Source of the DNA: Pocillopora damicornis
Taxonomy: Eukaryota
Length of the DNA: 64,000 nucleotides
Direction of reading: 5' to 3'
Assembly (NCBI RefSeq): GCF_003704095.1
Contig: NW_020844174.1
Coordinates: 186,001 to 250,000, forward strand
In this document: positions 18,062-39,557 of the stretch, one piece after another
Layout of the letters: each line of letters opens with the position of its first letter
Position numbering within the stretch: position 1 is the stretch's first letter
The notes under the pieces: model-generated
Database searches by the model: none
Told to the model about the DNA's origin: nothing
Seen by the model: the letters and a program-made list of their open reading frames with translations, nothing else
Translations under genes and position numbers: made by a program

Positions 18062-18919
18062 TCACAAGTCATCATTCATGAATCTGGTAAATTTTGAGAC
18101 ACCATTGGGAAGAGGAGCAGACACATCACAGATCTTAATTCCTGATCTTGGTATCTCTTCCACAGAAAGTGACACAGGGACCCACTTGATTTCACCTTTT
18201 GTCACTTTGTGAAATTCCATCGTCACCAGACCAGATACTTTAGAACCAACAATGAAAACACACACTTTCCATCTGTCTTCATTTTTGTGAACATTTTCTT
18301 TTCCTGTTCTGTCACGTGCTTCAATTAAAGAGACTTCTTGGCGGTTATACCCTATCACAAGCACCTCGTCTCCAAACTTTGTTCGGAAACCTTCTTCATT
18401 TGACAGCTTTTTCCAGGTTGAGTTGTAAGCCGCTCTCTTCAAAGCGTATTCATCTTTTTTGTCTTCCATAAGAGTCGTCACATCTAATAAATCTTCGGGA
18501 TCGTCATATAACTGAAACATGGACGCTATGTGTTTTGCCATATGGGGGTTTGTGTGCTTTAGTTGTACTGTCTCCTCCTCGATCCCAAATGTTAACAATC
18601 CGGTCGCACTTAACGTCAAGGAAACAGCAACGCACGACCAAAATACTACACCACCAGCCAAGCAAAAATATCGAAACCCTTGTAAAATTCTTGATTTCAT
18701 ACTTGAGGATTTTGAGGAAAACCCTTTCACGTCTGAAAGTAATTTCGGATTCCATGGAGGGCGCCATCCAATTAGAAGTGTGTTTGAATTGCCTTTCGTT
18801 TTCGTCACTACTGTTCTAACAAGTCCATATTTTGACATCAAATCAGGAAAAACTCTAGCTCTTTTGCCAGTAAATCCTGTCAATCTTGCTAGCCTTGTGT
18901 GAAAAAGGAAGAAAGCCAT
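18062..18919 (-). CDS. Intronless Tim21/Coa1-like mitochondrial inner-membrane protein, 285 aa
   Basis: Arg-rich, acid-poor N-terminus (presequence-like) and one TM (FCLAGGVVFWSCVAVSLTLSATGLLTF). The C-terminal pattern AYNSTWKKLSNEEGFRTKFGDEVLVIGY...VCVFIVGSKVSGLVTMEFHK...WVPVSLSVE resembles the Tim21 IMS domain. Confidence 0.55.
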   Translation of the reverse strand: MAFFLFHTRLARLTGFTGKRARVFPDLMSKYGLVRTVVTKTKGNSNTLLIGWRPPWNPKLLSDVKGFSSKSSSMKSRILQGFRYFCLAGGVVFWSCVAVSLTLSATGLLTFGIEEETVQLKHTNPHMAKHIASMFQLYDDPEDLLDVTTLMEDKKDEYALKRAAYNSTWKKLSNEEGFRTKFGDEVLVIGYNRQEVSLIEARDRTGKENVHKNEDRWKVCVFIVGSKVSGLVTMEFHKVTKGEIKWVPVSLSVEEIPRSGIKICDVSAPLPNGVSKFTRFMNDDL

Positions 18920-19053: not shown

Positions 19054-22000
19054 ATGGCGGCCACCGGAGGAAGCCACCTATCGAATGGTCGAGTTAATGT
19101 GGGCTTGCTGCGCGAATGCGCGAGAAGGGAACTTCTTCAGTGCTTGAATAAACAGCCTGGATCTAAGGTAGCGAAAAACCATCTGGTAGATTTGATTGAA
19201 TATCGATCCTTCTTGGAAATGATGGTCAAGGCTTTTCCAACCGGTAGTTGCTGAATGATTCCTTACTAAACAATTTTACTACCAGGAGTGAACTGCAATT
19301 AAACTCTCCCCACAATATTATAAATACATTTTGATAAACAAGGAATAATATTGCTTGATTTAACAATTAATTCTCAACACTTTCATCAAATGTATGTCAG
19401 AAAGTATCTAAGGAGACTATTGATCTTTAAGTCATCGGAATGAAAGTTTTAGAATTGACCTTTAATTTTGGACGAAACTTTTTAAAATTATATACTCTTT
19501 TTTTGCTTTTTGCAACAGGCTCTGGTTTGGGACGACAAGCTTACTGGGCCGTTTGGTTTGATTGCTGAATACAAGCTATTAAAGGTATGACTTAATGATA
19601 TTCCAACTCATTTATTTTTCTAACTAAAATTGTGGTAGAAGAGATAGCATTTGGCAAAACATCTCAGTCTATCTTGCAGTAGTAACTGGTCAAGTCACCC
19701 AGAAGTCATCTCTCCAAAGACATGTCACCTGAAACCTGAGTCATGTCACCTGAAATAAAAAGTCAAGTTGCCAGATTTCCTTATCACTTGTAAAACATCA
19801 AAATGGCTTATTTTTAGAAACCACTGAAGGTACCCTCCAATCAAACAACATTTTGGTGTATTTTCTTACCTTACCCATCCTTAACCCCTTAACTCCCAAG
19901 ATCTCAGTAGTAATTCTCCTTACTGTCTGCCATATAGTTCTTCTTTTGAGAATTCAGTATTGGATCAAGCAATAATCCCCTAATTAATATTTTCCTTTAT
20001 TCTCATCACTTGTCTGCTTGATATTGTATTGATATTGTAAGGAGAAATTCTGCCTTGGTCACTAATGGGAGTTAAAGGGTTAACAGTAAGATGTCACCTG
20101 ATGCTACTTGATTTAAAAGTTCAGCGAGACATACATAACTAACATAAACCAACCTGTGATTTGAAAGAGTGTATTTTTATGCTTAATTTGTTTCATTGAC
20201 TAAAGGAATTGATACAAAACATGTAGCAAAGCAATCAAAATGAATGGATCATGTTGTCCTAAACGAAGAAATTAAACCTGAACTAAAATTCAGCAGATAC
20301 AAGCTAATCCTATATTAACTTGACTGTAAACCTTTGCAGTCATTGTAATTATTGGAACATCATGATTACATTTTCTCATGTTTCTCCATCAACAAAAAAG
20401 TTACAAAGAAAGTTGCTCTGACATGGAAACCAATGTATTAAACAAAAAAATGGAAAAAAATGAAGACTTTTAGAGTCTTATCTCCTCACTTAAAGATGTG
20501 AAAACAGTTAAAATTGAGCACTTGTTTTCATGTTTGCCTTGAGTGTTTTGTTCATAATATGTTATTATAAATTGTAAATATGAATACTTGGTGGATTTTG
20601 AGGTTGTTCCATAATGTGTGCTTTTCTTCTAATTAACACAGGAACATGAAGTTGAAGTCATGTTCCCTCTTCGTCCTGGGCGCTTACCTCCATCACAAGT
20701 GCATAACATTATATTTATCACAAGACCTAAACCCTCATTGATGGACATAATTGCTGATAATGTCCTAAGGTAAGCTGAAGTTCTAACTTACTCTCAAAGA
20801 GAAAATGTTCAGTTGAGTTGAAAATTAAAACATGTGAACAATTTTGATATGTACTTCATTCTTAGACAGCAGATTATCACTTTGTCAAAAAATTCATATG
20901 TACTGTACTTAAATAATATATATTCAAAACTCTCACTATCCACACTCAGACGATCAAGGGTATTTAAAATAATCTACTCTGTCTCCTGTAGATATAACGA
21001 TATAACTATCTTCTCTGTAAGCAGTAAGTAAAGCTTTCTACAGTGTCTAACATACATGTATACAGTCTTGTACAGCTTTCTACAAAGTATACCCTTAACA
21101 TCAAATAGTCAATCATAACCTCATCTTTAAAGTCTGCCTGCAAAGTCTTGATTAGATTCAGCTATCAACACTGTCCACATAAGATTAAGCTATTTCCACT
21201 GTACACAGTAGATGAAAGTATTCACACTGTCTTTTGTCCAGAGAAAATGTCATTAGTTGAAAATCATCTTAATTCTCATTACCTATCAGCTCTAGAGTGT
21301 ATAAAATTTGAAAGGAGTATTCACAAACACTTTTCTCACAGAGGATCAAAATGTCAACATGAGGGCCTCATGTCTACATTTAAGTGCAGTAAATTAAATA
21401 CTAGTACTATGGTTGATAGCATCAACCTTTCCATGAATGTGACAAAAACATGTTCTGTTGCTCTACCAAACTTCAAAACTTCAACATTTTTGGTAGAAAA
21501 ACTTTAAAATTGTGGCACTATTCATTCTTAATTTTTGATACTGTCTTTGCATTTATGAACAACATTCTTTCAACCTCTGTCAGTAAGTGAATGGAGCTGT
21601 ACGAGAGCTTTCACTTGAATGTGTTAGTTGGTGGATAGTGGTATGCCACAGTTGAAATTTCTGCTCTATTTGTTGACTTCAAATGCTATTGCTGATCATC
21701 ATCCACAATTGCAAAAACCCTCTCAAGTGGGCAGGAAATGCAAAACCTTCATCCAAATGGGTGGGAAAACTTTGCAGTTATGTCATCAAAACATTGAAGT
21801 TTGATAGGCCAATAGGAAGGTTAATTATCAAATGTTGCCAATTGTTTCACTTTGTTATTCAGTGAGGAAGGCAAGACTGAAAGCAAGAAAAAAGAGTTCA
21901 CCATCCTTTTTGTTCCAAGAAAGACTTTGTTATGTCAAAGGAAACTTGAGGTAAGTTTACTAGTTGTATAATTTTTTTAAAATAAATATGTCACATCTTA

Positions 22001-24146
22001 ACACATGCAAGAGTGTGATGTTATTATAATTGTTGTTGTTCATATTTTCTTAATCCAAAGCTGTGAGTGACAATAGGAACAACTTTTACTGTATGCCCAA
22101 TTTAATCAAGGGGGTTGGTGTTTAGGAGAGGGTATGGATACTTATTCAAGGAGATACCTGCACTGTAATTTTCCAGCACATCCAGTTGGTTGAAAACTTT
22201 TAGTTTATTCAAAAGGTATGTGGATGTGTGCTGGAAACATTAGGGTACGTTCTGATATTTTATAGCGCTGTTTTGTTTTCAGGAATGGAAGGTATCTTTT
22301 ATCAACATCGATGAATATCCTCTAGAGCTTATACCATTGGACAGTGATGTCTTGTCACTTGAGATGGAGTCCAGCTTCAAGGTAAACTGCAGAAATTTAA
22401 TCATTCTATTACTAAATAAATAACTGAAAGTTGGTAAGTTACTCCCCTTAATTTGAGTTTTTTAATTTTTTAAAAATTGGCTTAGATCCATTTTTTTTGT
22501 AGTATTTTCAAACATCCCACAAGTGTTTGTGAAAGCAAGCACCAAAATAATCTTCTTGCTTTGCCAATCTATAGCTATTTGCAAAGATTGCAAGTAATGA
22601 AGTTTGTTAGTTTGGAGAAGGTGCAATCAAATTTCTCTCTATTTGTAAATTTTTTCAATTTGTTTTGCAGGAGTGTTACCTGGAAAATGACTCCACATCA
22701 TTATTTTATGTTGCCAACTCCTTGATGACACTTCAAACATTGTATGGCACAATCCCTAAGATTTATGCAAAGGGAGATATGTCAAAGGTGAGAGCCATAC
22801 TGATTTATTGATCATGGTAAATATAAATAGATAAAGATAAGTGTTTTGAAAAATCTGTCAAAAGAAAATTAGAGGTGCATTTCTTACATTGATCAAATAA
22901 TGTACTGGTAAAATTGTAAGACAGTAAATACTTATTCCTCAAGGTATCTTTGTATCACATATAGAGCTATTTTTGATGTAAAGCCTCAATAATGGTTCAT
23001 TTTCCAAAGATTAAATTTTTTCAGTGCTGTTTTGGTTCAGCTTGTATTTTTAAAAAGACTTCAAATTTAGTGAAATTGTACGTAGAAGTTCAGTGTTACT
23101 GGCCAAACTTCATTTTAAAATTTCAGGAAACAAAGTAGGGTAACTACAAAATTTAGTGCTACAGTTATTAAAATAAATAGTCATAGTTTTTAGTCATAAA
23201 AAATGTTTCTGTTCCTCAGAGTGAAATTTTGTTGTAGGGTTATTTTACAATCCATTTTATTTTAAAATGCAATTATTTTTGTTAGTTAAGTGAAATGAGT
23301 ATAGTTTTGTTTCATTTAATGTCATCGAAGGTAAAATATGGGTTTAAGCTTGTTAGTCAATGGTAGTATGCATTATTTTTCTCACTGACTTTTTCTTATT
23401 AAATTGTTACAATTAATTATTGTAAACAGCTAGTCTTAGACATGATGATGCGCAAGAAACGAGAGGCAGCTGATGCAGAAAACCAAGTCTCACCCCAAAT
23501 CGACACACTTCTGTTAATTGATCGTAACATTGACTTACTCACTCCATTATTTACTCAACTTACCTATGAAGGACTGATAGATGAACTATATGGAATACAC
23601 CACAGTAGGTACCATTGAGTTAAAGGTTACGACTGCTCAATGATTACTTAAAGAAATAAAGTTAAGGCTCATTTTCTTTGGAGACAAAGTTGAAGTATGA
23701 GTTATAGCTGGAGTTGCAACTAAAAATGTACTTGTAGCTTATTAAATCCAAAGTCTAAGTTGAAAATTGAGTCTAGGGCTGGATGGAATTGGAGTCTGAA
23801 TAATCGGATTGCTTGATTCCACTTTTGTCTCCATCACTTCTGATAAAGTGGAAAATCTGCTGTTAGATTTGCAAGCAGATGTTAAGGAACCAAACAATCA
23901 CCCTGATGAACTGAAGTAACTGCTGATGAAGTATTACAGATGCAAGGGCAATTATATCTGTATATTGAGTACTAGAATAATTATAGAATTTATTTTATGA
24001 TTCTGTTATTACAGTACTATGATACCTAGCAATTGTTTAGTGTTAACAACTGAGTTGAAAACGTAAATTGGTCATGGTTTTTTCACTCTTTATGGTGACC
24101 AATTTACGTTTTCAACTCAGTTGTTAACAATAAATTACCTGCTATA

Positions 24147-24195
<49 letters not shown>

Positions 24196-26651
24196 AATCG
24201 CTAGAGTTAGTCACAGACAAATTGTATTTTCTCTTTGAAGCCACAGCAAAGTTTCCACCCGAGAGATTCCCTCAAACTGAAGAGAAAGGACCTGGAGGAC
24301 TTCAACAACAACAACCCACTGGACCTAAGAAAGTTGTTTTAAACTCCAGTGATGAGTTGTTCTATGATATTCGAGATCTAAATTTCTCTGCTGTGGGAAT
24401 TCACTTGAGCAGGAAAGCCAAGCAGATTAGTGCTGCCTTTGAGGTCAGTTCATGGCCAAAAACATATCTTTGATGATTTCTCAAAGTTTCTTTTACCTTC
24501 CTCTGATCTGGTCGATAAATGCCAAGGTATTGGTTAAAAAAAAAAGAAGGGAACTAGTTATTGTTAGTGTTCTGACCTGACAGATTTTAGAGACAGTTTG
24601 TTTATTTATAAATTTGGAAGAAGCTGTAGGGTAATGGTAAGTGCACTGGAGTCTGGGTCATGAGGATTGTGCCTCTTTCCACTCAGAAGTAAAAATGGGA
24701 ACCAGCAAATTATCAGGGGAGCGTTATGAAGTGATATGGGGTAACCTTGCGATGGACTGGTATCCCATCCATAGGAAGTAGAAATTCTCCTAATCACTTC
24801 ATGCAATGGAAACTGAGATAAACTCTGGCTGCATGAGTCATTTTGCTTGAGTACAGACTTTACCTAGTACCTAAGTTCTTTTGTTTATTATGATGGGTTT
24901 GCTGATATGAGGGGTAATTCACATCATTTCCATCCTACTGTGACTGTAAAATCAAAACTCATCTCTGGAGGTAGATTTATATCATTGATAGTTATGGAAG
25001 TCAAGGGGAATGACTGAAAATTTCTTAGCTGAAAATGACAATGCAAAGAATGCCTCCTTTGAGTGATAGTAATCTCCTCACATAAAAATTCAAACAAGTG
25101 TTGGACTCAAGAGATCATGGAAAGTCATGGAATTTTATGAGGTTGAAAGTAAAAGAGTACTCTGCTAAAGAATATGTTATTATTCATTGTGTTAAATAAC
25201 TTAGTAGATGATTTATTGTTTTTCTGATTGCCTGATCAATTTATATCAATAGCCTGACACTATATCAAGAGACAAACAATAAAACTCCTCCTAAAAGAGA
25301 ACTAACCCTGAAAAAGTAGTAAGCTCTTTTGATGTCTTGTGTGACTCCTGTTCTGAGTTTTGCTGAAGATTCTTTTTTATCTTGCATTTTGCATCACCAG
25401 GAGCACAAAAGTGCCAAAACAGTGGGTGAAATGAAACAGTATGTTCAGAGGATTCCATTTATGCAAAGAGCAAAAGCTTCTCTTGCAACTCGTGAGTGAA
25501 GAAGTGTATTGTACTGAACCCAGTGGTTTGAGGGCAGATAATGTTATATCCACTGAATAACACTTGATATGGTGGAAAGTGCAGTATGTTTTGTTAACAC
25601 ACATTTATTTCATAGAGATTTGTCCATTAGATAGCATTATCTGCTCTCTGAACAACTAGGTCCTGGAGTTTAAAATGTTCATTCTTTTCTGTAACTGTGT
25701 AACTTGTAAGACATGAGTCTGATCTGATTTAAAGTTAATCATTAGAATTTATACTGTAGCACTTTTCCGAGGACTTTACATACTTTTGAGTGCTTTGGAA
25801 TCATCACTTTAATATTATTCAAATAATTAACTAATCAATGTACTAACCCTTTCCTCAGCAGTATGGCTTGATATCATCTTTGATTTTTTTTAACCAAATT
25901 AATATAGATAAAAAAAGGAACTCAAACCGTCTTTTTGAAACAAGCAAGGTCAATTTGAAAATGTAATATATGGCCACAGAGGAATTTTGCTTTTGTAAGA
26001 ACAAAGTGGGTATTCCTAAGTAGGAAGAAAAGCCAGATCCAGCTTACTTAGGTAGACAATCTCAATACACTTAAAAGATGTTTCTGCACATCATACAGAA
26101 TCCCCAGAAATGATGACAATGTACAAACCTGGAATAGTCTCCCAAATAACCTCAAACTGAATGAAATAATTACTCTAACCTGACCATTCTGAAGTTTCTC
26201 ACATTATTGTCATCTTTGACTGTAATTGATTTCACGTCATGCTGTTGCCCTCCACTGAAATTTACATTGTTGCAAAACGATAACTAGGGTGACCACGGGA
26301 GTGAACAGTGAGCTTTTTTATCTTCCTCCCTTTTGGGTCACATCAAATAGTTTGACTGCAACTGTTGGTTTTCATGTGAATATGCATTTCAAAGCTTTCA
26401 AGATCCAATTTTAGGCTTTTTCGCTGGTTTTCATGTGTTGTAAATGAATTCATAAAGCTCCAATTTTAGGATCGTTGGCCCTCCAGACTAGACAAGCTGG
26501 TAGTATGCAAATGCAAAAACTTCAGATTCAAGGTAAATCAAAAGAGATTAAGGGAGATATGCATCCTTGCTTTTAGATACGACCATAGCAGAGATGGTCA
26601 AGGAACAAACTGATTCTGAAGAGTTCAGAGAACGTATTCAAGTTGAACAAG
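19054..26651 (+). CDS. VPS33A: Vacuolar protein sorting 33A (Sec1/Munc18 family), exons 1-10
   Basis: Exons 19054-19167, 19519-19584, 20642-20769, 21863-21950, 22283-22381, 22671-22787, 23430-23604, 24241-24443, 25401-25491, 26577-26651. Motifs [64 protein letters not shown] and [16 protein letters not shown] closely match VPS33A. Confidence 0.95.
19881..20083. mobile_element. TTAA-flanked piggyBac-like MITE family A (~200 bp), intact copy
   Basis: TTAA CCCCTTAACTCCCA...TGGGAGTTAAAGGG TTAA. Other copies at ~30-241, ~4231-4437, ~5974-6183, 44854-45065 and ~45795-45990. Confidence 0.85.
24625..24865 (+). mobile_element. tRNA-derived SINE-like element
   Basis: ggtaagtgcactggagtc..., cctctttccactcag..aaatggg.accagcaaatt, ggggtaaccttgcgatggact.gtatcccatcc, cttcatgc..ggaaac.gagataa. 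A related copy lies in reverse orientation at ~52195-52490. Confidence 0.6.
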
Positions 26652-27809: not shown

Positions 27810-29867
27810 TTAATTTCCCAGCAGTTTGTCCAACTCCTTTCTAAACTTGAGTACATGAAACATGTTCTTAAGCTGAAGTGTGTGTTCAAGACATTTGTAA
27901 AAATAATCTGGGCATTCTCCTCGGAGCTCTTGAAGTTCAATCAATGTTTGTCCTGTGAATTCAGCCATGTCTTTGTCACACACCTGTGCCAATCCAATTT
28001 TCTTCAGCCATTTTTTCACGTCCTTATTTGTCCATCCGGCTACATCTGGACCAGAGGGCTGTTTTGTTAGAGTCGTGGCCTCGGTTGTTCGAATCATCGC
28101 CTCTGGGGGCCCGTCTGTGTGATCCACATCTTTTCCTCTTCCCGCTAATTCTCTGACCAGTTTTGCCACACCAGAATCAATGGTATGCTTACTCTGAAAG
28201 CCAATCCACAGTTTCGTTCCCAACAGCATTCCTAGCCAGCCATCCGCTTTGTAATTTTTCTGCATCATCAAAGGAATGATGTCTTTTCTTAACTGGTAGG
28301 CGTACTCGGCCTCTGAACGACAGTTGGGACTCTCTTTGTATCGTTGTGACACGCAGATCAATACAACAGCAGCGTTCTCGACAGCTTTGGCCATTGCGTC
28401 CAGTGTGGACCCACCCATCTGCTCCAGGTCCATCCAAACTCTGTATCCATTAGCCTGAAGTTGATTTTTGACTTGAACCAAGACATCCTGAGCATCCCAT
28501 TGGTAGCTAATCATCACGTGGTTTCCAGACCCCTCTTTTGTCTTGTCGGCTTTGTCTCTTGCTGTCTTTCCTTCAATCTCCCACAATGCTCCAGCGGCTA
28601 CCTTTTGCACTTCAGCGTTTTGACTGTGGTGTAATGTGCGTAAGATGTCCACGGTTCCGTCTCCCTCTCGAATGATATCCTTGTTAGAGTCGTCGAAAGC
28701 CAGCATCCACAATGCTTTAACCGCACTCGCTCGTTCCTCGTCGTCGCTTGAGGTCTGGAGTGTTGACGTTAAAACTCTTATTGCCCCTTCGCATCCAAGA
28801 ATTTGCTTGTTGTTGTCGTTAATTGCCAAATGACTGAGTCCTTCTGCAAGTTCCTTAGCGGAGAATCCGTTGCTTCGGCGGTCTTCTGCATTCCAAGCTT
28901 CGTCTAACATTGTTATAATGAAGCGAAGCAAGTCTTTTTCGGCGGAGATTAGATGATTAGTTTCTTCATTAACAAGGTACGCCAGGCACAACAAGGCCGA
29001 GGTAGCAATACTTGCCACTTTAACCTTTGCAAAATAAAGTAAAGTCTCGTCACTGTTAGCAAACCATTGGCGATCTCTCAGTCGGCGAGAAATGTTGTGC
29101 AAAATGCCGGTGCACGCGTCAAGTATGAGAAATGTTTCAGATCCTTCATCTTCGCTTTGCCAGTCATCATTCTCTTGATCGATCCTCTTGATATTCTCCA
29201 TGCAAGTTAGTACAACTCCATCTTGAGCGCTCGCCAAGCAAAAACCATCGTGGAAATCAGCAAAGTTTTGTATTATTGACAGTGCGAATAAAAGGCTGTC
29301 AAAGCAAGTGAAAGTCTCCTCTTGGTCACTTGTTCTCAATTCGTCGTCTGTTCCATCAGTATAGTAATCTTTGAAACAGTTTTTCACGAAGCTATGCAAC
29401 ACTGTTGCTCCTTCGACTTCAATTATAAACTCCATAAGTGTGCTGAATTTTTCTGAGTCGTTCGTCCCTGCTGATGTATATGTGCTGTAGCTTTTTTCAG
29501 CCAACTCTACAATTGTTCCTCCCAGCCTAGAATATTGAATTATATGTCCCTTGGATTTGTCGTCTACGGCTTTTCTCAAACCTTGTAGAGGGGTTAACAT
29601 CGTTTGAAGGTCATCTTGTAGCTCTGGGAAGCTGTGCGTGTATTTAAGTAAGACTTCCCACTCATCCAGTGAAATCATCTCACTTCGTTCTTCGTTCTTG
29701 TGCTCCTTGTTTACACTTGACGTATGGCCATGATCTTGTGCTGGCCGGTGTTGAACAACTTTGGGCTTCAAATCAGATATTGGCGGTCTGTTCACAGCCG
29801 TGTCCATTTGAGGCTGTCGAGGTACTACATTAAGATTTCTAGATTTCTTTGATCCACCAGAACCCAT
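27810..29867 (-). CDS. Intronless ARM-repeat/TIR/SAM protein, copy 1 (685 aa from MGSGGSKK)
   Basis: ARM-like repeats (ELAEGLSHLAINDNNK, AVKALWMLAFDDSNK, AAGALWEI), a TIR_2-type domain (HVMISYQWD...VWMD...SQRYKESPNCRSEAEYA...IIPL, ~28523-28141) and a C-terminal SAM-like domain (WTNKDVKKWL...FTGQTLIEL). First ATG at 29867. Confidence 0.88.
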   Translation of the reverse strand: MGSGGSKKSRNLNVVPRQPQMDTAVNRPPISDLKPKVVQHRPAQDHGHTSSVNKEHKNEERSEMISLDEWEVLLKYTHSFPELQDDLQTMLTPLQGLRKAVDDKSKGHIIQYSRLGGTIVELAEKSYSTYTSAGTNDSEKFSTLMEFIIEVEGATVLHSFVKNCFKDYYTDGTDDELRTSDQEETFTCFDSLLFALSIIQNFADFHDGFCLASAQDGVVLTCMENIKRIDQENDDWQSEDEGSETFLILDACTGILHNISRRLRDRQWFANSDETLLYFAKVKVASIATSALLCLAYLVNEETNHLISAEKDLLRFIITMLDEAWNAEDRRSNGFSAKELAEGLSHLAINDNNKQILGCEGAIRVLTSTLQTSSDDEERASAVKALWMLAFDDSNKDIIREGDGTVDILRTLHHSQNAEVQKVAAGALWEIEGKTARDKADKTKEGSGNHVMISYQWDAQDVLVQVKNQLQANGYRVWMDLEQMGGSTLDAMAKAVENAAVVLICVSQRYKESPNCRSEAEYAYQLRKDIIPLMMQKNYKADGWLGMLLGTKLWIGFQSKHTIDSGVAKLVRELAGRGKDVDHTDGPPEAMIRTTEATTLTKQPSGPDVAGWTNKDVKKWLKKIGLAQVCDKDMAEFTGQTLIELQELRGECPDYFYKCLEHTLQLKNMFHVLKFRKELDKLLGN

Positions 29868-29953
29868 AATAACTGAATTGTTAGACAACCTAATCGCCAA
29901 GAGCACGATGCAGCACGTAAAGTTAGACTTTCTCTGTTACTATGCTGTGAATC

Positions 29954-30053
29954 NNNNNNNNNNNNNNNNNNNNNNNNNNNNNNNNNNNNNNNNNNNNNNN
30001 NNNNNNNNNNNNNNNNNNNNNNNNNNNNNNNNNNNNNNNNNNNNNNNNNNNNN
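29954..30053. other. Assembly gap (100 N)
   Basis: Run of N. Confidence 1.
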
Positions 30054-30233
30054 GAACTAAAATTTCAAATGCCTTACGCTCTAGGCGTCGTTTACTGCGC
30101 ACGTCATAGATTGTTTTCCACGGGCTTTTCTTTGCTCTCATCTGGCATCCCGCGTAAGGGATTAGTCTCTGGCAATGGTCCACATATTGCATTCTAAAAA
30201 CAAAGAAATTTGTACAATCACGCGTCTGTTTAC

Positions 30234-31220
30234 CTCTTCAAGTCCTCTCCAGCCCTGCGGCCGCGCCAGAAACTGCGCCAGCCGGACAGTGAGCGGCGCG
30301 TATCCTGAAAAGACGTATGCGATGTCGTTTGGGTTCTGAAAAGTGAAAACGAAAATTAATATCCTGATATCCACACCATACTGGCCAATTCTTGACATGT
30401 CCTCCAGCCCATAAGTCGCTGCGATACCTTCGACCGACACACTCTAGTAACCCTCACTTCATGCCTTGTTATATGAAGAATACCAATTTAAAATACCCAT
30501 CTCTATTTACCTGCTCTTGGACATCTTCCACGACAAGCTTCATTGACTTGCGCAATTGATTGTAAGATCGAGACGGCTGCGTCTGCGCTCTTAGCAAGCC
30601 AGCAGTTTCCAATGTAGAAAGCGTCCTGTACGTATGCTCAAAGCCATATGTCTACGAAAAAGAGAAATGGCGCTTCAGGCTTTGGCAGACTACAGAGGAA
30701 ACTTCAGAAAGGTAATGATTGAAAGCATTCCATTTTTCGTTCTTTTTTTTTCTTTTTTTTTATTGTGCATTTTTATTTTTTTTCTTTACCCAAGTGGAAA
30801 AGCAAACTAAGAAACTCACCTGTAGGATTTCCCGATAGTAGAACTCCAACATCTTCGGTTTAAAACCGTTATTTGTAAACACTGAGCACACAACAAACGA
30901 AGCACCTTGCAAAATTTGAAAAAAAGAAAGTGAAAGATAGATTGTTGCAATGAGAAGCAGAGAGGGGAAGAGTTAGGGGATGGGTGGGGGAAATCGTGAA
31001 CGCATGTAAAATGTACGTTATCAACTGCAAGCACTTTTGCGTCAGCCAATAAGATTCTAGAAGTCATACTGTGCAAGAGGGTTTAAAACTTTAAAGATCT
31101 TAGACAGGTCATTAGGTGATGGTATCGTCTGTTTACTTACGGTAATCAGCGGTTTCTTCAATCCAAAGCATTTCTCTATGTAAGGGTTGATTTTATCCGT
31201 GTCCAAGCCTTGAGCCAGCT
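30234..31220 (-). CDS. VPS33A: VPS33A exons 11-14, on the opposite strand to exons 1-10; exon 12 has a 1-nt frameshift
   Basis: Exons 31220-31141 ([18 protein letters not shown]...), 30905-30820 ([27 protein letters not shown], 86 nt), 30651-30511 (TYGFEH...EDVQEQ), 30335-30234 ([34 protein letters not shown]). Exon 11 is phase-compatible with exon 10. Confidence 0.88.
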
Positions 31221-31616
31221 CTGAACAAAAATTCGAAAAAACGATGGAAATATATTTTTACTATATTGTATTGTTGAATGCAACAAAGTCAAACGTTTTG
31301 AGAATTAATCAAATCATCATCAGTTAGATATTCTGGTAGCTGTCATACTCAGCCAACTCAAACATACAAGTTACAAGCGTAAGTAACTTTGGAGTTATGT
31401 AAAAACACATCGATTAATTTAGAGGTACGCCTTCTTCTTTCATCTACAGACGCAAGGCTGTCGTGGAGGTTAGAGCGAAGAGAAAAACATTTTTGAGCTT
31501 GAAGCTAAAGGAGGAAAAATGGGCGACAAGTTTTGAAATTAAATGAGTCACTAGCTGTAAGACTTTTTTAACAATTTTTTTACTGAAGTTGGTTCATTTT
31601 CATCCATGTAAATCGG

Positions 31617-32335
31617 GAGTTATCTTTGCCATTTATTAAAAAAAAATTTATTTTCCCTTTGAACTGACAGAAGTCGTTAATTGAAATTCAGTGTGACTCC
31701 TAAAATTTGCATTTCCGTTTGCAAGAGGGTAGCGAAGCATTTCAAAACAGAAAGCAGTAGGGTGGGTTTTGTTCAAAACGAGACAAACAACTACGATTAC
31801 CATGATGCAGTACTAAACGAGTCACGAAATCTTTGGAGTATGGGCACGGCTTAAGAGCAATATTCCCTTGGAAAAGTTCTTCAGACTAACGGAAGAGGAT
31901 TTCAAACCTTCAATTTGCTTGAATGAACTTCAAGGACAACTTATGTTGTCAAACGATGTCATTATGTTGTTGTAAATTGTGAGTTATCTTTACCATTTGT
32001 CACAACAAATAAATTTTCCCTTTAAACTGACAAAAGTCGTTGATTGAAATTCCGTGTGACTCCTAAAATTTGCATTTTCGTTCGTAAGAGGGTAGCGAAG
32101 CATTTCAAAACAGAAAACAGTATGTGGGTTTTGTTCAAAACGAGACTGATAACTACGATTACCATAATGCAGTATTAAACGAGTCACGAAATCTTTGGAG
32201 CATGGGGACGGCTCAAGAACAATATTTCCCTTAAAAAGCTCTTCAGACTAACGAAATGGGATTTGAAACCCTTAATTTGGTTGAAAGAACTTCAAGGACA
32301 ATTGATGTTCTTAAACGATGTCATAATATTGTAAA
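31617..32335. repeat. Tandem duplication (~364-bp period) upstream of TIR copy 2
   Basis: GAGTTATCTTT at 31617 and 31981 begin two similar blocks (gtgactcctaaaatttgcattt, gagggtagcgaagcatttcaaaacag, cgagtcacgaaatctttggag). One homologous block lies upstream of copy 3 (~39200-39550). Confidence 0.85.
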
Positions 32336-32354
32336 AGAGAAAGACAGGTTGTCA

Positions 32355-32384
32355 ATGACGTCATAGGGAGTTGTAGTCACGTGA
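32355..32384. promoter_or_regulatory. CRE/ATF site, ACTACAACTCCC motif and E-box upstream of TIR copy 2
   Basis: TGACGTCA 32356-32363 (also conserved upstream of copy 3 at 39174-39181), GGGAGTTGTAGT (reverse ZNF143/THAP11-type motif) and CACGTG 32378-32383. Confidence 0.4.
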
Positions 32385-32714
32385 TTGCTTTCAGGAAAAA
32401 ATGAATATCCAAATCGAGGGAGTAGCGGTAACTATGTCTAACTCTGACTGACGGAAATACTCGTTGTCTGTAACTTTTAAGCAAAATTTCGTCTACTTTT
32501 CGCAAGTAACTGGCCTCTACGCAAGGAGATTCAACCCGAAAATTTCTCCCCAATGACATACGCAGTAAGATTCACAGCATAGCAACAGAGAAAGTCTAAC
32601 TTTACGTGCTGCATCGTGCTCTTGGCGACTAGGTTGTCAAACAATCCAATCATTGTGAGTTATGGTGGATCAAAGAAATCAAGAAATCTTAATGTAGCAC
32701 CTCGACAACCTGAA

Positions 32715-34727
32715 ATGGAAATGGCTGTCAACAGACCACCGACATCTGATTTGAAGCCCGAACTTGTTCAACACCTGCCTCTACAAGATCACGGCCATAC
32801 GTCAAGAGTAAACATGGAGCACAAGAACGAAGAACGAAGTGAGAGGATTTCATCGGCTGAGTGGGAAGCCTTACTTAGAAGAACGTATAAGAAATACGCA
32901 GAAAGCTTCCCAGAGCTAGGAGATGCCCCTCCAATAATGTTTAATTCCCTAAGAGAGTTGAGGAAAGCCGTAGACGACAAATCCAAGGGACATATAATTC
33001 AATATTCTAAGCTGAGAGGAATACTCGTAGAGTTGTTTGAAAAAAGTTACAGCACATGTGAGTCAGCGCGGACGAACGACTCAGAAAAATTCAATGCACT
33101 TATGGAGTTTATAATTGAAGGCGAAGGAGCAACAGTGCTGCATAGCTTCGTGAAAAACTGTTTCAAAGATTTCTATACTAATGGAAAAGACGAAAAGTTG
33201 GGCACAAGTTACCAAAAGGAGACTTATACTTGCGTTAAGAGCCTATCATACGCATTGTCAACAATACAAAACTTTACTGATTTCCACGATGGTTTTTGCT
33301 TGGCGAGCGCTCAAGATGGAGTTGTACTAACTTGCATGGATAATATCAAGAGGATCGATCAAGAGAATGATGACTGGCAAAGCGAAGATGAAGAATCTGA
33401 AATATTTGAAGTACTAGACGCGTGCATCTCAATTTTGCACAACATTTCTCGCCGACTGCGAGATCGCCAATGGTTTGCTAACAGTGACGACACTTTGCTC
33501 TATTTTGCAAAAGTTAAAGTGGCAAGTATCGCTGCCACGGCGTTGTTGTGCCTGACTTACCTTGTTGATGAAGAAACTAATCATTTGATATCCGCCAACA
33601 AAGACTTGCTCCGCTTCATTATAGCAATGTTAGACGAAGCTTGCGAGGCCGAAGACCACAAAAGCAACGGATTCTCCGCTAAGGAACTTGTAGAAGGACT
33701 CGGTCGTTTGGCAATTAACGACAACAATAAGAAAATTCTTGGAAACGAAGGGGCAATAAGAGTCTTAACGTCAAGAATCAAGACCTCGAGCGACGACGAG
33801 GAACGAGCGAGTGCGGTCGAGGCATTGTGGATGCTGGCTTTCGCCAACTCAAACAAGGATATTATTCGAGAGGGAGACGGGACCATGGAGATCTTACGCA
33901 CATTACACCACAGTCAAAACGCTGAAGTGCAAAAGGCAGCCGCTGGAGCATTGTGGGAGATTGAAGGAAAGACAGCAAGAGACAAAGCCGATAAGACAAA
34001 AGAGGGGTCTGGAAACCACGTGATGATTAGCTACCAACGGGATGCTCAGGAAATCATGATCCAAGTCAAAAATCAACTTCAGGCTAATGGATGCAGAGTA
34101 TGGATGGATCTGGAGCAAATGAGTGGGTCCACACTAGAGACAAGGGCCAAAGCTGTTGAGAACGCTGCTGTTGTACTGATCTGCGTGTCACAACGATACA
34201 AAGAGAGTCCAAACTGTCGTTCAGAGGCCGAGTACGCCTACCAGTTAGGAAAAGACATCATTCCTTTGATGATGGAGGAAAATTACAAAGCGGATGGCTG
34301 GCTAGGAATGCTATTAGGAACGAAACTGTGTATTGGCTTTCAGAGTAAGGATAACATTGATTCCGGTGTGACAAAACCGGTCAAAGAATTGGCGGGAAGA
34401 GGAAAAGATGTGGATCACACAGACGGCCCCCCAAAGAAGAGGATTCGAAAAACTACGGCCACCACTCCAACAAAACAGCCCTCTAGTCCAGATGTAGCCG
34501 AATGGACAAATGAGGACGTGAAGAGATGGCTGGAGAAAATTGGATTAACACAGGTGTGTGACGAAGACATGGTTGAATTCACTGGACAAACACTGATTGA
34601 ACTTCAAGAGCTCCGAGGAGAATGCCCAGATTATTTTTACAAGTGTCTTGAGCGCACATTTCAGCTTAAAAACATGTTTCATGTACTCAAGTTTAGAAAG
34701 GAGTTGGACAAACTGCTAGGAAATTAA
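32715..34727 (+). CDS. ARM/TIR/SAM protein, copy 2 (ancestral ATG mutated to GTG at 32655; first in-frame ATG 32715); possibly decaying
   Basis: Uninterrupted ORF paralogous to copies 1 and 3 along its whole length. The start region reads GTG AGT TAT instead of ATG GGT TCT, and several otherwise shared TIR residues are substituted. Confidence 0.75.
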   Translation: MEMAVNRPPTSDLKPELVQHLPLQDHGHTSRVNMEHKNEERSERISSAEWEALLRRTYKKYAESFPELGDAPPIMFNSLRELRKAVDDKSKGHIIQYSKLRGILVELFEKSYSTCESARTNDSEKFNALMEFIIEGEGATVLHSFVKNCFKDFYTNGKDEKLGTSYQKETYTCVKSLSYALSTIQNFTDFHDGFCLASAQDGVVLTCMDNIKRIDQENDDWQSEDEESEIFEVLDACISILHNISRRLRDRQWFANSDDTLLYFAKVKVASIAATALLCLTYLVDEETNHLISANKDLLRFIIAMLDEACEAEDHKSNGFSAKELVEGLGRLAINDNNKKILGNEGAIRVLTSRIKTSSDDEERASAVEALWMLAFANSNKDIIREGDGTMEILRTLHHSQNAEVQKAAAGALWEIEGKTARDKADKTKEGSGNHVMISYQRDAQEIMIQVKNQLQANGCRVWMDLEQMSGSTLETRAKAVENAAVVLICVSQRYKESPNCRSEAEYAYQLGKDIIPLMMEENYKADGWLGMLLGTKLCIGFQSKDNIDSGVTKPVKELAGRGKDVDHTDGPPKKRIRKTTATTPTKQPSSPDVAEWTNEDVKRWLEKIGLTQVCDEDMVEFTGQTLIELQELRGECPDYFYKCLERTFQLKNMFHVLKFRKELDKLLGN

Positions 34728-35660
34728 TTGCGATTGGCGAAATATGCAATTCCTCTCATTCGCCTAGTTAAGGAACAGTTGTGTGATGTGTGTCACACAA
34801 TTCTTTACATTTAGGGGCAAAGCTCGTGTATGATCATGAACTTTTGGACTGTAAAGATGAATCGTTCATCAAACGGACACGCTTTCACATGAGCAAACTA
34901 AGACAAAATGACCCAACGTACCCCGAGAATAGATTCTTGTTTTTATTTACAATTTGTTTTCAATCAGTTCGCCAAGGACGTAAATCCGAATGGAATAAGT
35001 TCGGTGGTTGAAAAACGGGTCGCAGCAACCAAATCCAATGTTGACGCTATAGCAATAATATTCGAATAGCAACTGAAATATGTACTAAATTCTAGAGATA
35101 AAAGCGTTATACTCAAATTTCTAATTGAACAATTTGCTAGTTTCTGCACAGCCATGTACAGTTTTGTTAGCCATGTTTTTTTTAAATTAGGTTGGTTATA
35201 AATCATACATTTCCAGTTCTTTTGTACCATTGTTGAGCTCACTTGTTGACTGCCATTAGCACTGAAGGATTTTCTGAGGTTTAAAAATTACCTCTAAGGT
35301 TTTAAAAGCCAAAGAAGGTTCTAAATCACCATAAATTATCGATCAGTCGAGATGGCATTGAACATACTCCAAGATTTTTTTTTTAAGATCCAGTGCAAAG
35401 ATGAATATTGATATGCTAAATACAATTCCATATTGAGAAAAAGGGAAGTTGACGCTTTCGTTTTTGAAATACAGGCACATTGTTAATAGTGTTTAAAAGA
35501 GGGTGTTATTTTCTAACCAGTCCCTTCAAAAGGGTTTTATAATATCTATCAAGTTATTTTTTATGATATTTACAGTCGTAGTTGTAGGCTCCTTGGAAGA
35601 GTACTTTGTAGTGATGATAAATACCGTGGATAAGTAAAGTTTTCATTCATTCATTCATTC

Positions 35661-35760
35661 NNNNNNNNNNNNNNNNNNNNNNNNNNNNNNNNNNNNNNNN
35701 NNNNNNNNNNNNNNNNNNNNNNNNNNNNNNNNNNNNNNNNNNNNNNNNNNNNNNNNNNNN
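35661..35760. other. Assembly gap (100 N)
   Basis: Run of N, preceded by a (TTCA)n microsatellite. Confidence 1.
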
Positions 35761-36504
35761 AAAAATAGTTTGGAGAATTGCCATAGTAATGGAGGGCCTA
35801 AAAGGTTTAAACTTTATACTAAACGCTTTAAAACAACCAATTTCATATAAGCACTTGGCTGTTTTTCTACTTAATCCTCTCTAGAAGTTACTCACAGCGC
35901 TGGCATCGTAAAAAATAACTTGATAGATATTATAAAACCCTTTTGAAGGGACTGGTTAGAAAATAACACCCTCTTTTAAACACTATTAACAGTGTGCCTG
36001 TATTTCAAAAATGACAGCGGTAACTTCCCTTTTTTCAATATGGAATTGCATTCAGCCTACCAATATTCATCTTTACACTAGATCTTAAGCAAAACCTTGG
36101 AGTATGTTCAATGCTTTCTCGACTGATTGATAATTTATGGTGACTTAGAACCTTCGTAGGCTTTTTAAACCTTGGAGGTACTTTTTAAACCTCAGAAAAC
36201 CCTTCAGTGCTAATGGCAGTCAACAAATGAGCTCAACAATGATAGTAAAGAACTGGAACTGTAGGATTTATAACCAACTTGATTTAAAAAAAAAAACATG
36301 GCTGGTAAAACTATACATGACTGTACAGAAACTAGCAAATTGTTCAATTAGAAATGTAATTATGACGCATTTATCCCTAGTATTTAGTATATATTTAAGT
36401 TCTTCCTCGAATACTGCTGCTATAGCGTCAATGAGCTTATTACATTTGGATTTACGTCCTTAGCGAACTGACTGACAGCGAATTGTAAAATATATACAAG
36501 AATC

Positions 36505-36639
36505 GGATCAATATCAGTATCTGGGCAACTGCTCACCTACCCTCCCCTAACTCAAAACAGTCAATTGATAACAAGTTAGGGTTAATGTTGGGTTAGGGGA
36601 GGGGTAGGTAGGCAATTGCCCAGATACTGATATTGATCC
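36505..36639. mobile_element. 135-bp palindromic MITE with ~8-bp target-site duplication in the 3' flank of TIR copy 3
   Basis: TIRs GGATCAATATCAGTATCTGGGCAA...TTGCCCAGATACTGATATTGATCC, flanked by CAAGAATC/TAAGAATC. The site is empty in the paralogous flank of copy 1 (~27598 caagagtctattctc). Confidence 0.88.
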
Positions 36640-36850
36640 TAAGAATCTATTCTCGGGCACATTGTGTCAGGTTGTCTCAGTTTTCTCATGTGAAAACGTG
36701 ACCGTTTGCGGAACGAGTCTTCTTTGCAGTCCAAAACTACATGGTCACACACGAGTTCCGTTCTTCAATTTACAGAATTGTGTGACACACATCACGCAAC
36801 TGATCCTTAACTAGGCGAACGAGAAGAATTGCATATTTCGCTAATCGCAA

Positions 36851-38896
36851 TTAATTTCCCAGCAGTTTGTCTAACTCCTTTCTGAACTTGAGAACATGAA
36901 ACATGTTTTTAAGCTGAAGTGTGTGCTCGAGACACTTGTAAAAATAATCTGGGCATTCTCCTCGGAGCTCTTGAAGTTCAATCAATGTTTGTCCTGTGAA
37001 TTCAGCCATGTCTTTGTCACACACCTGTGCCAATCCAATTTTCTTCAGCCATCTCTTCACGTCCTCATTTGTCCATCCGGCTACATCTGGACCAGAGGGC
37101 TGTTTTGTTAGAGTCGTAGCCTCAGTTGTTCGAATCACCGCCTCTGGGGGGCCGTCTGTGTGATCCACATCTTTTCCTCTTCCCGCTAATTCTTTGACCA
37201 GTTTTGTCACCCCAGAATCGATGGTATGCTTACTCTGAAAGTCAATCCACATTTTCGTTCCCAACAGCATTCCTAGCCAGCCATCTGCTTTGTAATTTTT
37301 CTGCATCATCAAAGGAATGATGTCTTTTCTTAGCTGATAGGCATACTCGGCCTCTGAACGACAGTTGGGACTTTCTTTGTATCTTTGTGATACGCAGATC
37401 AGTACAACAGCTGCATTCTCCACAGCTTTGGCCATTGTCTCTAATGTGGACCCACCCATTTGCTCCAGATCCATCCACACTCTGTATCCATTTGCCTGAA
37501 GTTGATTTTTGACTTGAACCAAGACTTCCTGAGCATCCCATTGGTAGCTAATCATCACGTGGTTTCCAGACCCCTCTTTCATCTTTTCGGCTTTATCTCT
37601 TGCTGTCTTTCCTTCAATCTCCCACAATGCTCCAGCGGCTACCTTTTGCACTTCAGCGTTTTGACTGTGGTGTAATTTGTGTAAGATGTCCACGGTTCCA
37701 TTTCCCTCTCGAATGATATCCTTGTTAGAGTCGTCGAAAGCCAGCATCCATAATGCCTTTGCGGCACTCGCTTGTTCCTCGTCGTCGCTCGAGGTCTCGA
37801 GTGTTGACGTTAAGACTCTTATTGCCCCTTCGCTTCCAAGAATTTTCTTATTGTTGTCGTTAATTGCCAAATGACTGAGTCCTTCTGCAAGTTCCTTAGC
37901 GGAGAATCCGTTGCTTCGACGGTCTTCTCCTTCCCAAGCTTCGTCTAACATTGTTGTAATGAAGCGAAGCAAGTCTTTGTCGGCGGAGATTAAATGATTA
38001 GTTTCTTCATTAACAAGGTACGCCAGGCACAACAAGGCCGAGACAGCGATACTAGTCACTTGAACCTTTGCAAAATAGAGTAAAGTCTCGTCACTGTTAG
38101 CAAACCATTGGCGATCTCTTAGCCGTCGAGAAATGTTGTACAAAATCCCGGTGAACCCTTCTAGTATTTGTATTATTTCATATTCTTCATCTTCGCTTTG
38201 CCAGTCGTCATTTTCTTGATCGATCCTCTCTATATTCTCCATGCAAGTGAGTACAACTCCATCTTGAGCGCTCGCCAAGCAAAAACCATCATGGAAATCA
38301 GCAAAGTTGTGTATTGTTGACATTGCGAGATAAAGGCAAGTAAAAGTCTCCTCTTGGTCACTTGTCTCCGATTCGTCGTCTGTTCCATCAGTATAGTAAT
38401 CTTTGAAACAGTTTTTCATGAAGTTATGCAGCACTGTTGCTCCTTCGACTTCAATTATAAACTCCATAAATGTATTGTATTTTTCGACGTCGTTCGTCCC
38501 TGCCGACGGTGTGCTGCAACTTTTTTTAAACAACTCTTTGAGTACTTTTATCAGCTTAGAATATTGAATTATATGTCCCTTGGATTTGTCGTCTACGGCT
38601 TTTCTTAAACCTTGTAGAGGAGTTAACATCATTTGAAGGTCATCTTGTAGCTCTGGGAAGCTGTGCGTGTATTTAAGTAAGACTTCCCACTCATCCAGTG
38701 AAATCCTCTCACTTCGTTCTTCGTTCTTGTGCTCCTTGTTTACACTTGACGTATGGCCGTGATCCTGTCCGGGCCGGTCTTGAACAACTTTGGGCTTCAA
38801 ATCAGATGTCGGCGGTCTGTCCACAGCCATGTCTATTTGAGGTTGTCGAGGTACTACATTAAGATTTCTTGAATTCTTTGATACACCAGAACCCAT
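36851..38896 (-). CDS. Intronless ARM/TIR/SAM protein, copy 3 (681 aa from MGSGVSKN)
   Basis: Same architecture as copy 1 with a near-identical TIR and SAM. First ATG at 38896. Confidence 0.88.
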   Translation of the reverse strand: MGSGVSKNSRNLNVVPRQPQIDMAVDRPPTSDLKPKVVQDRPGQDHGHTSSVNKEHKNEERSERISLDEWEVLLKYTHSFPELQDDLQMMLTPLQGLRKAVDDKSKGHIIQYSKLIKVLKELFKKSCSTPSAGTNDVEKYNTFMEFIIEVEGATVLHNFMKNCFKDYYTDGTDDESETSDQEETFTCLYLAMSTIHNFADFHDGFCLASAQDGVVLTCMENIERIDQENDDWQSEDEEYEIIQILEGFTGILYNISRRLRDRQWFANSDETLLYFAKVQVTSIAVSALLCLAYLVNEETNHLISADKDLLRFITTMLDEAWEGEDRRSNGFSAKELAEGLSHLAINDNNKKILGSEGAIRVLTSTLETSSDDEEQASAAKALWMLAFDDSNKDIIREGNGTVDILHKLHHSQNAEVQKVAAGALWEIEGKTARDKAEKMKEGSGNHVMISYQWDAQEVLVQVKNQLQANGYRVWMDLEQMGGSTLETMAKAVENAAVVLICVSQRYKESPNCRSEAEYAYQLRKDIIPLMMQKNYKADGWLGMLLGTKMWIDFQSKHTIDSGVTKLVKELAGRGKDVDHTDGPPEAVIRTTEATTLTKQPSGPDVAGWTNEDVKRWLKKIGLAQVCDKDMAEFTGQTLIELQELRGECPDYFYKCLEHTLQLKNMFHVLKFRKELDKLLGN

Positions 38897-39557
38897 AATA
38901 ATGGGATTGTTAGACAACCTAGTCGCCAAGAGCACGATGCAGCACGTAAATTTACAGTTTCTCAGTTGCTATGCTGTGAATCATACTGCGTTTGTCATCG
39001 GGGAGAAATTTTCGTGTTGAATGTCCTTGCTTAGTGGCCAGTTACTTATGAAATGTAGACGAAATTGTACTTAAATGATGTCGACAATGAGTTTTTCCGT
39101 CGGTCAGAGTTAGACATAGTTACCGCCGCTCCCTCGAGTTGGATATATGTTTTTCCTGAAAGCAATCACGCTATGACGTCATCGATCATCTGTCTTTCTC
39201 TTTTATAATACAATAACATCGTTTCGTTGCAAACATCAGTTGTCCTTGAAGCTCATTCAAGCAAATCAAAGGTTTGAAATCCTATTTCGTTAGTCTGAAG
39301 AGCTTTTCTAAGGGAATATTGCTCTTGAGCTGTGCCCATGCTCCAAAGATTTCGTGACTCGTACATTACTGCATTATGGTAATCGTAGTTAACTGTATTG
39401 TTTTGAACAAAACCCACCTTGCTGTTTTCTGTTTAGAAATGCTTGGCTACCCTCTTGCGAACGAAAATGCTAACTTTTTGGATTTGCATTGAATTTCAGT
39501 TACCGACCTCTGTCTGTTCAAAGGGAAAAAAAATTTGTTAAATAAATGACAACATGG

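Follow-up and report, generated by a model that had tools for sequence, protein, structure and literature searches.

Three neighboring genes in the coral Pocillopora damicornis, which we refer to as A, B and C, encode proteins in which an ARM-repeat solenoid is followed by a TIR domain and then by a C-terminal SAM domain. They lie within the 64,000-nucleotide stretch of DNA that we analyzed (NCBI RefSeq assembly GCF_003704095.1, contig NW_020844174.1, positions 186,001 to 250,000 of the forward strand; hereafter the window), and positions are counted from its first letter. The interpretation that we favor, and to which we give about an even chance of being correct, is that these are expressed or expressible, membrane-tethered paralogs whose TIR domain would be restrained by the ARM solenoid, clustered through the SAM domain and able to cleave nicotinamide adenine dinucleotide (NAD+) via a glutamate, Glu519 in protein A. 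An initial annotation of this DNA had reported three long paralogous open reading frames (ORFs) and regarded them as a locally expanded family, and both observations hold. Each gene is a single intact ORF, the full open frames run from 27810 to 29906 (-), 32616 to 34727 (+) and 36851 to 38935 (-), and the three neighboring proteins are mutually 82-90% identical (82% for B and 90% for C when compared with A). Three open frames of ~690 codons in DNA of 38-44% GC, with a ratio of nonsynonymous to synonymous substitution rates (dN/dS) below 1, are far beyond what chance would produce. Coordinates of genes, domains and motifs are given in Table 1.

The ARM-TIR-SAM domain order, which had also been proposed in the initial annotation, is real in all three proteins and is borne out by Pfam, by an AlphaFold model of A (mean predicted local distance difference test score, pLDDT = 83) and by structural matches. 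Pfam TIR_2 was found in A, B and C (e-values from 1e−24 to 2e−20; 83, 74 and 88 bits, respectively, against a cut-off of 28) and in all 55 members of our family alignment, and the Pfam Arm repeat scores above its cut-off in the three proteins. In the model of A, a helical solenoid (residues 67-440) leads into a beta-alpha TIR fold (450-575), which is followed by a disordered linker (583-605) and a five-helix bundle (614-683). The solenoid aligns over ~280-310 residues with designed ARM proteins, APC-ARM, beta-catenin and Vac8 (VIA-align, Z = 18-20), and the family profile matches ARM proteins with an e-value of 5e−37.

Pfam SAM_1 falls below its cut-off in A, B and C (18-20 bits versus 23). 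We nevertheless retain the SAM call because aligned homologs match SAM_1/SAM_2 (e-values = 2e−8 and 5e−9; 11-15 of the 55 match in the same region) and because the C-terminal 86 residues, modeled alone with AlphaFold (pLDDT = 80), find exclusively SAM domains as their top PDB matches. The best of these are SAM1-2 of SARM1 (TMq = 0.68, probability = 1.00, e-value = 0.03, identity = 26%), then Caenorhabditis elegans TIR-1 and Shank, with the top SAM structures at TMq 0.6-0.68. Foldseek e-values for so short a model are weak (0.03 and above), and it is the fact that every top match is a SAM domain that leads us to this assignment. For the full-length model of A, the best Foldseek matches are human SARM1 chains (e-value = 7e−7). 

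The initial annotation described the three genes as a domain-permuted SARM1-like system. This is apt as a description of module content: SARM1, TIR-1 and dSarm carry the same three module types, and SARM1 is the closest structural match both of the full-length protein and of the SAM domain alone. As a statement of descent it is not demonstrated. SARM1 has the order ARM-SAM-SAM-TIR with two SAM domains, whereas the coral proteins have ARM (64-443), TIR (446-575) and one SAM (606-685), and the SARM1 N-terminus is a mitochondrial targeting region where A and C carry a lipid-anchor motif. Sequence similarity between these TIR domains and that of TIR-1 is weak (e-values of 0.26-0.6). In a survey that clustered eukaryotic TIRs at 40% identity, the present family falls under the representative A0A0B7AZE4_1 and SARM1 under T1J6E6_2 (bioRxiv 10.64898/2026.04.20.719644). 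Further, SARM1 occurs in ~1 copy per genome, as against many copies of the ARM-TIR family (PMC7075850). The genes being SARM1 orthologs is ruled out by the domain order, the single SAM domain and the different survey cluster of the TIR domain, and the separation from SARM1 that was originally proposed therefore stands.

All three TIR domains retain a catalytic-type glutamate. The initial annotation had placed its codons at 28313-28311, 34224-34226 and 37354-37352, which coordinate arithmetic on the ORFs shows to be correct. In HMMER alignments Glu519 of A falls on the Glu that is catalytic in RPS4, in Cat1 and in C. elegans TIR-1 (motif WVHKE), the last a SARM1 relative; a PDB sequence search with the TIR domain of A alone gave weak matches (e-values of 0.06-1.3) that we used for residue alignment only. 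As in Cat1, Thoeris ThsB and RPS4/RPP1-type TIRs, the aligned residue lies on helix alpha-C (alignments with Cat1 and RPS4). Across the 55 aligned family members, conservation of Glu519 is 90% or higher, and 136 of 149 distant cluster representatives have an S..C..E..Y-like motif.

Support for an enzymatic function comes from neighboring survey clusters with similar motifs, whose activity in E. coli was Glu-dependent: oyster and herring TIRs gave cyclic ADP-ribose (cADPR), and a coelacanth TIR depleted NAD+ (bioRxiv 10.64898/2026.04.20.719644). The corresponding TIR domains (Magallana gigas A0A8W8J0Z4, Clupea A0A6P8EVF3 and Latimeria H2ZXV5) share motifs of the ISY..., WMD, C..E and IP kind with the coral proteins, and the motifs of the active animal TIRs are of the ISYQWD and NC..E type, as in A, B and C. 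They do belong to different 40% clusters, and the fish proteins are short. A putative NAD+-cleaving activity of the three coral proteins is plausible. Catalysis that depends on oligomerization is a general rule for bacterial and plant catalytic TIRs. Those proteins carry other partner domains and oligomerize via an NB-ARC resistosome, a filament or CARF, whereas the coral proteins would use SAM.

We examined this last point by predicting the association of three copies of the SAM domain. The score was 0.43 against 0.01 for the best control, three runs shared at least 95% of their contacts and the pLDDT of the partner was 80 or more. The predicted interface sets residues 50-58 and 70-78 of the modeled fragment against residues 37-64. 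Among proteins solved as pairs of one chain, 21 of 30 reach the mark used for self-association; among those solved as single chains, none of 23 does. Our run used three copies, unlike this calibration, and the pass may reflect memory of solved SAM oligomers. Within these limits, the SAM domain is predicted to self-associate.

The initial annotation considered the proteins cytosolic, which our data do not support. A and C, like most relatives, begin with an N-myristoylation-type motif, that is Met-Gly with a small residue or Ser/Thr at position 6, and this start is conserved. Among full-length relatives, 90 of 120 close ones and 49 of 105 distant ones start with MGxxx[S/T], and some of these starts read MGC. 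Given this conservation, a membrane-tethered protein is likelier than a free cytosolic one, and A and C are probably membrane-anchored by N-myristoylation. An N-terminal Met-Gly lipid anchor also stands ahead of the TIR domain in TRAM/TICAM2 and ahead of the ARM solenoid in Vac8. The latter is among the structural and profile matches of the coral proteins but has no TIR domain, and TRAM has neither an ARM nor a SAM domain. B-type genes lacked the Met-Gly motif in all samples that we examined.

Taken together, these features suggest the following mechanism. The N-myristoyl tether (Met-Gly-x-x-x-Ser, basic residues and ~60 disordered residues) would place the protein on a membrane, where the ARM solenoid, which at ~380 residues is also the most variable part, would bind a ligand or partner and hold the TIR domain in check. 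The SAM domain, following a flexible linker, would give head-to-tail self-association. Upon activation the clustered TIRs would form composite active sites and cleave NAD+ via Glu519, with either a cADPR-type signal or NAD+ depletion as the output.

The pattern of selection on A and C shows which parts of the proteins are most constrained. In this pair dN/dS is 0.08 for the TIR domain and 0.06 for the SAM domain, both of which are under strong purifying selection, and 0.47-0.58 for the N-terminal ARM region. The latter value is raised but below 1, and we found no overall positive selection on the N-terminal region; dN/dS exceeds 1 only in short disordered and linker stretches of the B-C pair, where very few changes have occurred. 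The synonymous rate (dS) is ~0.18-0.21 for all pairs. The closest pair of paralogs switches along the gene, which is the pattern left by gene conversion.

RNA data point to transcription of gene C. Several studies with polyA/oligo-dT RNA libraries contain 70-86% of the sampled sequence words of gene C and its flanks, and the assembled contigs describe a transcript with a 5′ untranslated region of at least 257 nt, a 3′ untranslated region of ~240-265 nt and no splice joint, supporting an unspliced mRNA. In the 3′ flank of C, positions 36361-36682 show an RNA-contig word depth of up to ~5000 with many loose ends, and this segment is probably a highly repeated, transcribed mobile element.

Gene B is the divergent copy. 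A GTG at 32655 occupies the position homologous to the start codons of A and C, and it is followed by Ser-Tyr where A has Gly-Ser, so that Ser replaces Gly2. The protein departs from the family at 3 of 48 conserved positions, all of them in the TIR domain (W457R, M492R and L570P), while A and C depart at none; it forms a long stem branch in the tree, and the overall dN/dS on pairs that include B is ~0.5. Because the lipid-anchor start has been lost and conserved TIR positions are substituted, B is likely a diverged, regulatory or decaying copy. The same features would be expected if the cluster, or at least B, consisted of decaying or redundant duplicates without current function, an explanation that we consider quite improbable. 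It is opposed by the intact state of all three ORFs, by the purifying selection on the TIR and SAM domains of A and C and by the polyA RNA contigs that cover gene C. Further, many independent Pocillopora-like assemblies contain intact B-type ORFs of 687-691 amino acids that begin in the same way, and several of these ORFs have a canonical TIR domain. These B-type proteins share a Met-Ser-Tyr (GTG) start, and their TIR domains are either canonical (Trp, Met) or B-like (Arg/Gln, then Arg), as seen when P0002, P0004-P0006 and P0008 are compared with P0007 and P0009-P0018. On these sequences, the B-type TIR segment is mosaic or polymorphic between samples or species.

Several observations weigh against the membrane-tethered NADase that we favor. 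The initial annotation knew of no functional characterization of such proteins, which is outdated: four isolated TIRs of the same 40%-identity cluster (A0A0B7AZE4_1), from Chlamydomonas, Branchiostoma lanceolatum, Lepisosteus and Phallusia, have been expressed in E. coli, and Table S4 of that survey does not mark them as active (bioRxiv 10.64898/2026.04.20.719644). Where SARM1 and plant TIRs have a Trp four positions ahead of the Glu, the coral proteins have Asn. The RNA contigs cover copy C only and carry no information on strand, level or induction. Finally, the only ties to immunity are the domain content and the expansion of the family, and a role of the three proteins in cell death is likewise putative. 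On the other side, the active coelacanth TIR also has Asn four residues before its Glu, and the screened constructs were isolated TIR domains without SAM, sampled after 1 h, in a table that is also blank for the known-active plant controls RUN1 and RPS4 (bioRxiv 10.64898/2026.04.20.719644). Since the family carries a C-terminal SAM domain and an N-terminal lipid motif, the isolated domains may have missed what the enzyme needs.

The negative screen fits an alternative that we regard as possible but somewhat unlikely, namely that the proteins are non-catalytic, membrane-anchored TIR adaptors similar to TRAM/TICAM2. Such adaptors would bridge coral TLR/IL-1R-like receptors to partners, with ARM for recruitment, SAM for clustering and the Glu kept for reasons of structure or of an interface. 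Both ARM and SAM domains classically mediate contacts between proteins, and the lipid-anchor motif at the N-terminus matches that of TRAM, which is not known to have a catalytic Glu. For ARM-containing ecTIR-DC families, a role as adaptors or regulators has been hypothesized (PMC6321704). However, classical adaptor and receptor TIRs mostly do not have the Glu according to the survey (bioRxiv 10.64898/2026.04.20.719644), while here the Glu and its motif are near-invariant from coral to lancelet, and sister clusters with similar motifs are Glu-dependent enzymes.

The three genes are members of a large, mostly invertebrate and already catalogued ARM-TIR(-SAM) family and do not represent a new kind. 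Scanning 1.84 billion representatives, we found that the family comprises at least 682 clusters (50% identity) at an e-value below 1e−30, most of which align from ~residue 190 to the C-terminus and hence have the ARM, TIR and SAM-like end in common. Named members, from Pocillopora, Branchiostoma, Haliotis, Ptychodera, Mytilus, Mactra and Mercenaria, are all labelled 'uncharacterized', and the family extends over corals, molluscs, hemichordates and lancelets. Identity across the ARM, TIR and C-terminal domains is 35-46% to proteins of Pocillopora, Branchiostoma, Haliotis, Ptychodera, Mytilus and clams. The Branchiostoma belcheri protein P0129, the near-identical counterpart of the B. lanceolatum protein that was tested in the survey, matches A with 41% identity over 510 residues and with 68% identity in the TIR domain, and P0125 (A0A3M6T9G3), a listed member of cluster A0A0B7AZE4_1, is 46% identical overall. 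The coral proteins also have the ARM/TPR-clan solenoid N-terminal to a TIR domain that is at least 40% identical to members of that cluster. The ecTIR-DC families were reportedly described by Gerdol et al. in 2017, and the invertebrate ARM-TIR proteins are said to be related to them. Immunome surveys of invertebrates, for instance of Aplysia, list 'ARM-TIR' as a category (PMC9334734), and P. damicornis ARM(TPR-clan)-TIR proteins were placed in cluster A0A0B7AZE4_1, each with a predicted catalytic GLU (bioRxiv 10.64898/2026.04.20.719644). In the ARM-TIR literature that we consulted, whose scope does not extend to Gerdol et al. 2017 and Poole & Weis 2014, we found no description of the C-terminal SAM domain or the N-terminal lipid motif.

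One of the catalogued proteins, A0A3M6UDF3, is annotated 'TPR; Sec1' with a TIR domain at 562-687 and Glu632 (bioRxiv 10.64898/2026.04.20.719644). The offset of its TIR domain and Glu fits gene A plus 113 N-terminal residues, and we infer that it is a gene model joining the Sec1-like exons at 30231-31251 (-) to gene A across the first assembly gap.

As a discovery the cluster is modest, since public annotation and surveys already include both the genes and their family. What is new here is the lipid-anchor motif, the resemblance of the SAM domain to those of SARM1 and the prediction of its self-association, the pattern of selection and mosaicism, the divergent copy B and the occurrence of single-exon clusters in Desmophyllum and Porites as well. 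NAD+-cleaving TIR enzymes are central to bacterial, plant and neuronal death signaling, and whether most non-TLR animal TIR proteins act likewise is only now being tested. The present family is among the largest and best conserved of the animal TIR groups, as the identity between coral and lancelet TIR domains illustrates, and it has expanded in reef corals, animals in which bleaching and disease are governed by immunity and symbiosis. In practice, what is gained is a sharper experiment, as the SAM domain and the lipid motif point to missing requirements and to action at membranes. More broadly, we speculate, while judging it unlikely in this full form, that the family comprises widespread and ancient lipid-anchored, SAM-assembled TIR enzymes. 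Their variable ARM solenoid would capture a microbial or symbiont ligand and trigger an NAD+-derived messenger or NAD+ depletion at membranes, independently of TLR/MyD88 and SARM1. The isolated TIRs would then have failed for want of SAM, and in corals tandem duplication together with gene conversion would vary the sensor surface. If true, animals would thereby have an equivalent of TNL signaling in plants and TIR signaling in bacteria.

The window copies form a scleractinian single-exon subfamily. In this genome A, B and C are the only single-exon ARM-TIR copies, while five further relatives match exon by exon and lie in two tandem clusters on two other contigs, C3401 (~21.6-75.4 kb) and C2447 (~119-126 kb), with TIR domains 51-69% identical to that of A. 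A P. verrucosa paralog is also multi-exon and spans 8.6 kb. The cluster that we found in Desmophyllum pertusum has four copies, two of which are arranged tail to tail; it is part of a contiguous record and is enclosed by Sec1/VPS33A exons that share one strand. The gene span of at least two of the copies (619 and 685 amino acids) equals the uninterrupted ORF, that of the 681-amino-acid copy is 38 nt longer than its coding sequence, and the gene model of the first copy is a fusion with Sec1 exons. Porites lutea has two tandem single-ORF copies. Recent retrocopies private to the P. damicornis genome are ruled out by these clusters in Desmophyllum and Porites; an old retroposition is a possibility, given that this genome's other relatives and the P. 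verrucosa paralog have several exons each. Maximum-likelihood analysis places the copies of each lineage together with 100% support, a grouping that would fit either independent expansions or concerted evolution.

Two scaffold gaps separate the copies, and one of them lies exactly at the center of the tail-to-tail palindrome formed by B and C; Desmophyllum holds a similar tail-to-tail pair. Contigs often break at the centers of genuine inverted duplications. Since both gaps are outside the ORFs, continuity of the reading frames across them is not an issue for the proteins, and the possibility that the gaps interrupt A, B or C was ruled out. Less secure are the sequence 5′ of A and the direction in which the middle contig was placed. 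The exons of a VPS33A-like gene occur as two halves on opposite strands across gene A and the first gap, whereas in Desmophyllum both halves are on the same strand with the ARM-TIR cluster between them, so the 5.6-kb contig at 30054-35660 is either mis-oriented or reflects a real inversion. By analogy with the Desmophyllum record, the cluster may lie within an intron of VPS33A. The gaps and the split VPS33A-like gene would also suit an assembly artefact, in which haplotypes or collapsed or expanded repeats were joined into three copies. We hold this to be highly improbable, as proteins that diverge by 10-18%, with dS of 0.18-0.21, are far above allelic levels, independent assemblies contain separate A-like, B-like and C-like proteins, and clustered copies occur in the contiguous Desmophyllum record and in Porites.

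Table 1. Positions of the ARM-TIR-SAM genes, their domains and motifs, and surrounding features in the window
Feature	Position	Strand	Basis or remark
Gene A, single-exon coding sequence including stop	27810..29867	-	ORF from ATG, 685 amino acids
Gene B, ORF with homology from GTG 32655	32655..34727	+	First ATG at 32715 would give 670 amino acids
Gene C, single-exon coding sequence including stop	36851..38896	-	ORF from ATG, 681 amino acids
Disordered N-terminus of A, residues 1-62			AlphaFold model
ARM-repeat solenoid of A, residues 64-443	28539..29678	-	Structural alignment and profile matches
TIR domain of A, residues 446-575	28143..28532	-	Pfam TIR_2, e-value 2.4e−23; beta-alpha pattern in model
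SAM domain of A, residues 606-685, five-helix bundle	27813..28052	-	Model, PDB matches, Pfam matches of homologs
MGSGGSK of A, N-myristoylation-type motif, then basic residues	29847..29867	-	ORF start
MGSGVSK of C, N-myristoylation-type motif	38876..38896	-	ORF start
Glu519 codon of A, motif SPNCRSE	28311..28313	-	Aligned to known catalytic Glu
Equivalent Glu codon of B	34224..34226	+	Protein alignment and coordinate arithmetic
Equivalent Glu codon of C	37352..37354	-	Protein alignment and coordinate arithmetic
PolyA-RNA contigs over gene C, collinear, no joints	36585..39153	-	RNA contigs from three studies
Assembly gap 1	29954..30053	.	87 nt upstream of the A ATG; homology of A to B and C reaches the gap edge
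Assembly gap 2	35661..35760	.	Between the 3′ ends of B and C, center of tail-to-tail inverted repeat
Inverted-repeat arms 35041-35567 and 35905-36431, 88.5% identical	35041..36431	.	3′ flanks of B and C
Two tandem copies of a 364-bp unit, 87% identical, upstream of B	31607..32332	.	One copy also upstream of C, 39212-39552
Ten exons matching the N-terminal 384 amino acids of a VPS33A/Sec1-family gene	19054..26650	+	tblastn; just upstream of the cluster
Exons matching the Sec1-family part that lies head-to-head with a Desmophyllum ARM-TIR gene	30231..31251	-	Here head-to-head with gene B

Among the flanking features, the 364-bp unit found upstream of both B and C may belong to a promoter region that the two genes share and that is possibly bidirectional. 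The VPS33A-like exons just upstream of the cluster include a Pfam Sec1 match at 23427-23627. An ORF at 46161-46823 (-) of 220 amino acids matches Pfam DUF383 (e-value = 2.6e−30) and is probably an exon of a gene for an HGH1-like ARM-type protein, and two further ORFs, at 62627-63970 (-; 447 amino acids) and 18062-18919 (-; 285 amino acids), gave no Pfam match. A dispersed repeat of ~200 bp, 77-85% identical between copies, occurs at no fewer than five sites (25-244, 5970-6184, 19878-20084, 44850-45068 and 45806-45991) and looks like a short interspersed nuclear element (SINE) or a miniature inverted-repeat transposable element (MITE). Finally, a tandem repeat with a period of ~109 bp and 94% identity lies at 59503-59830.

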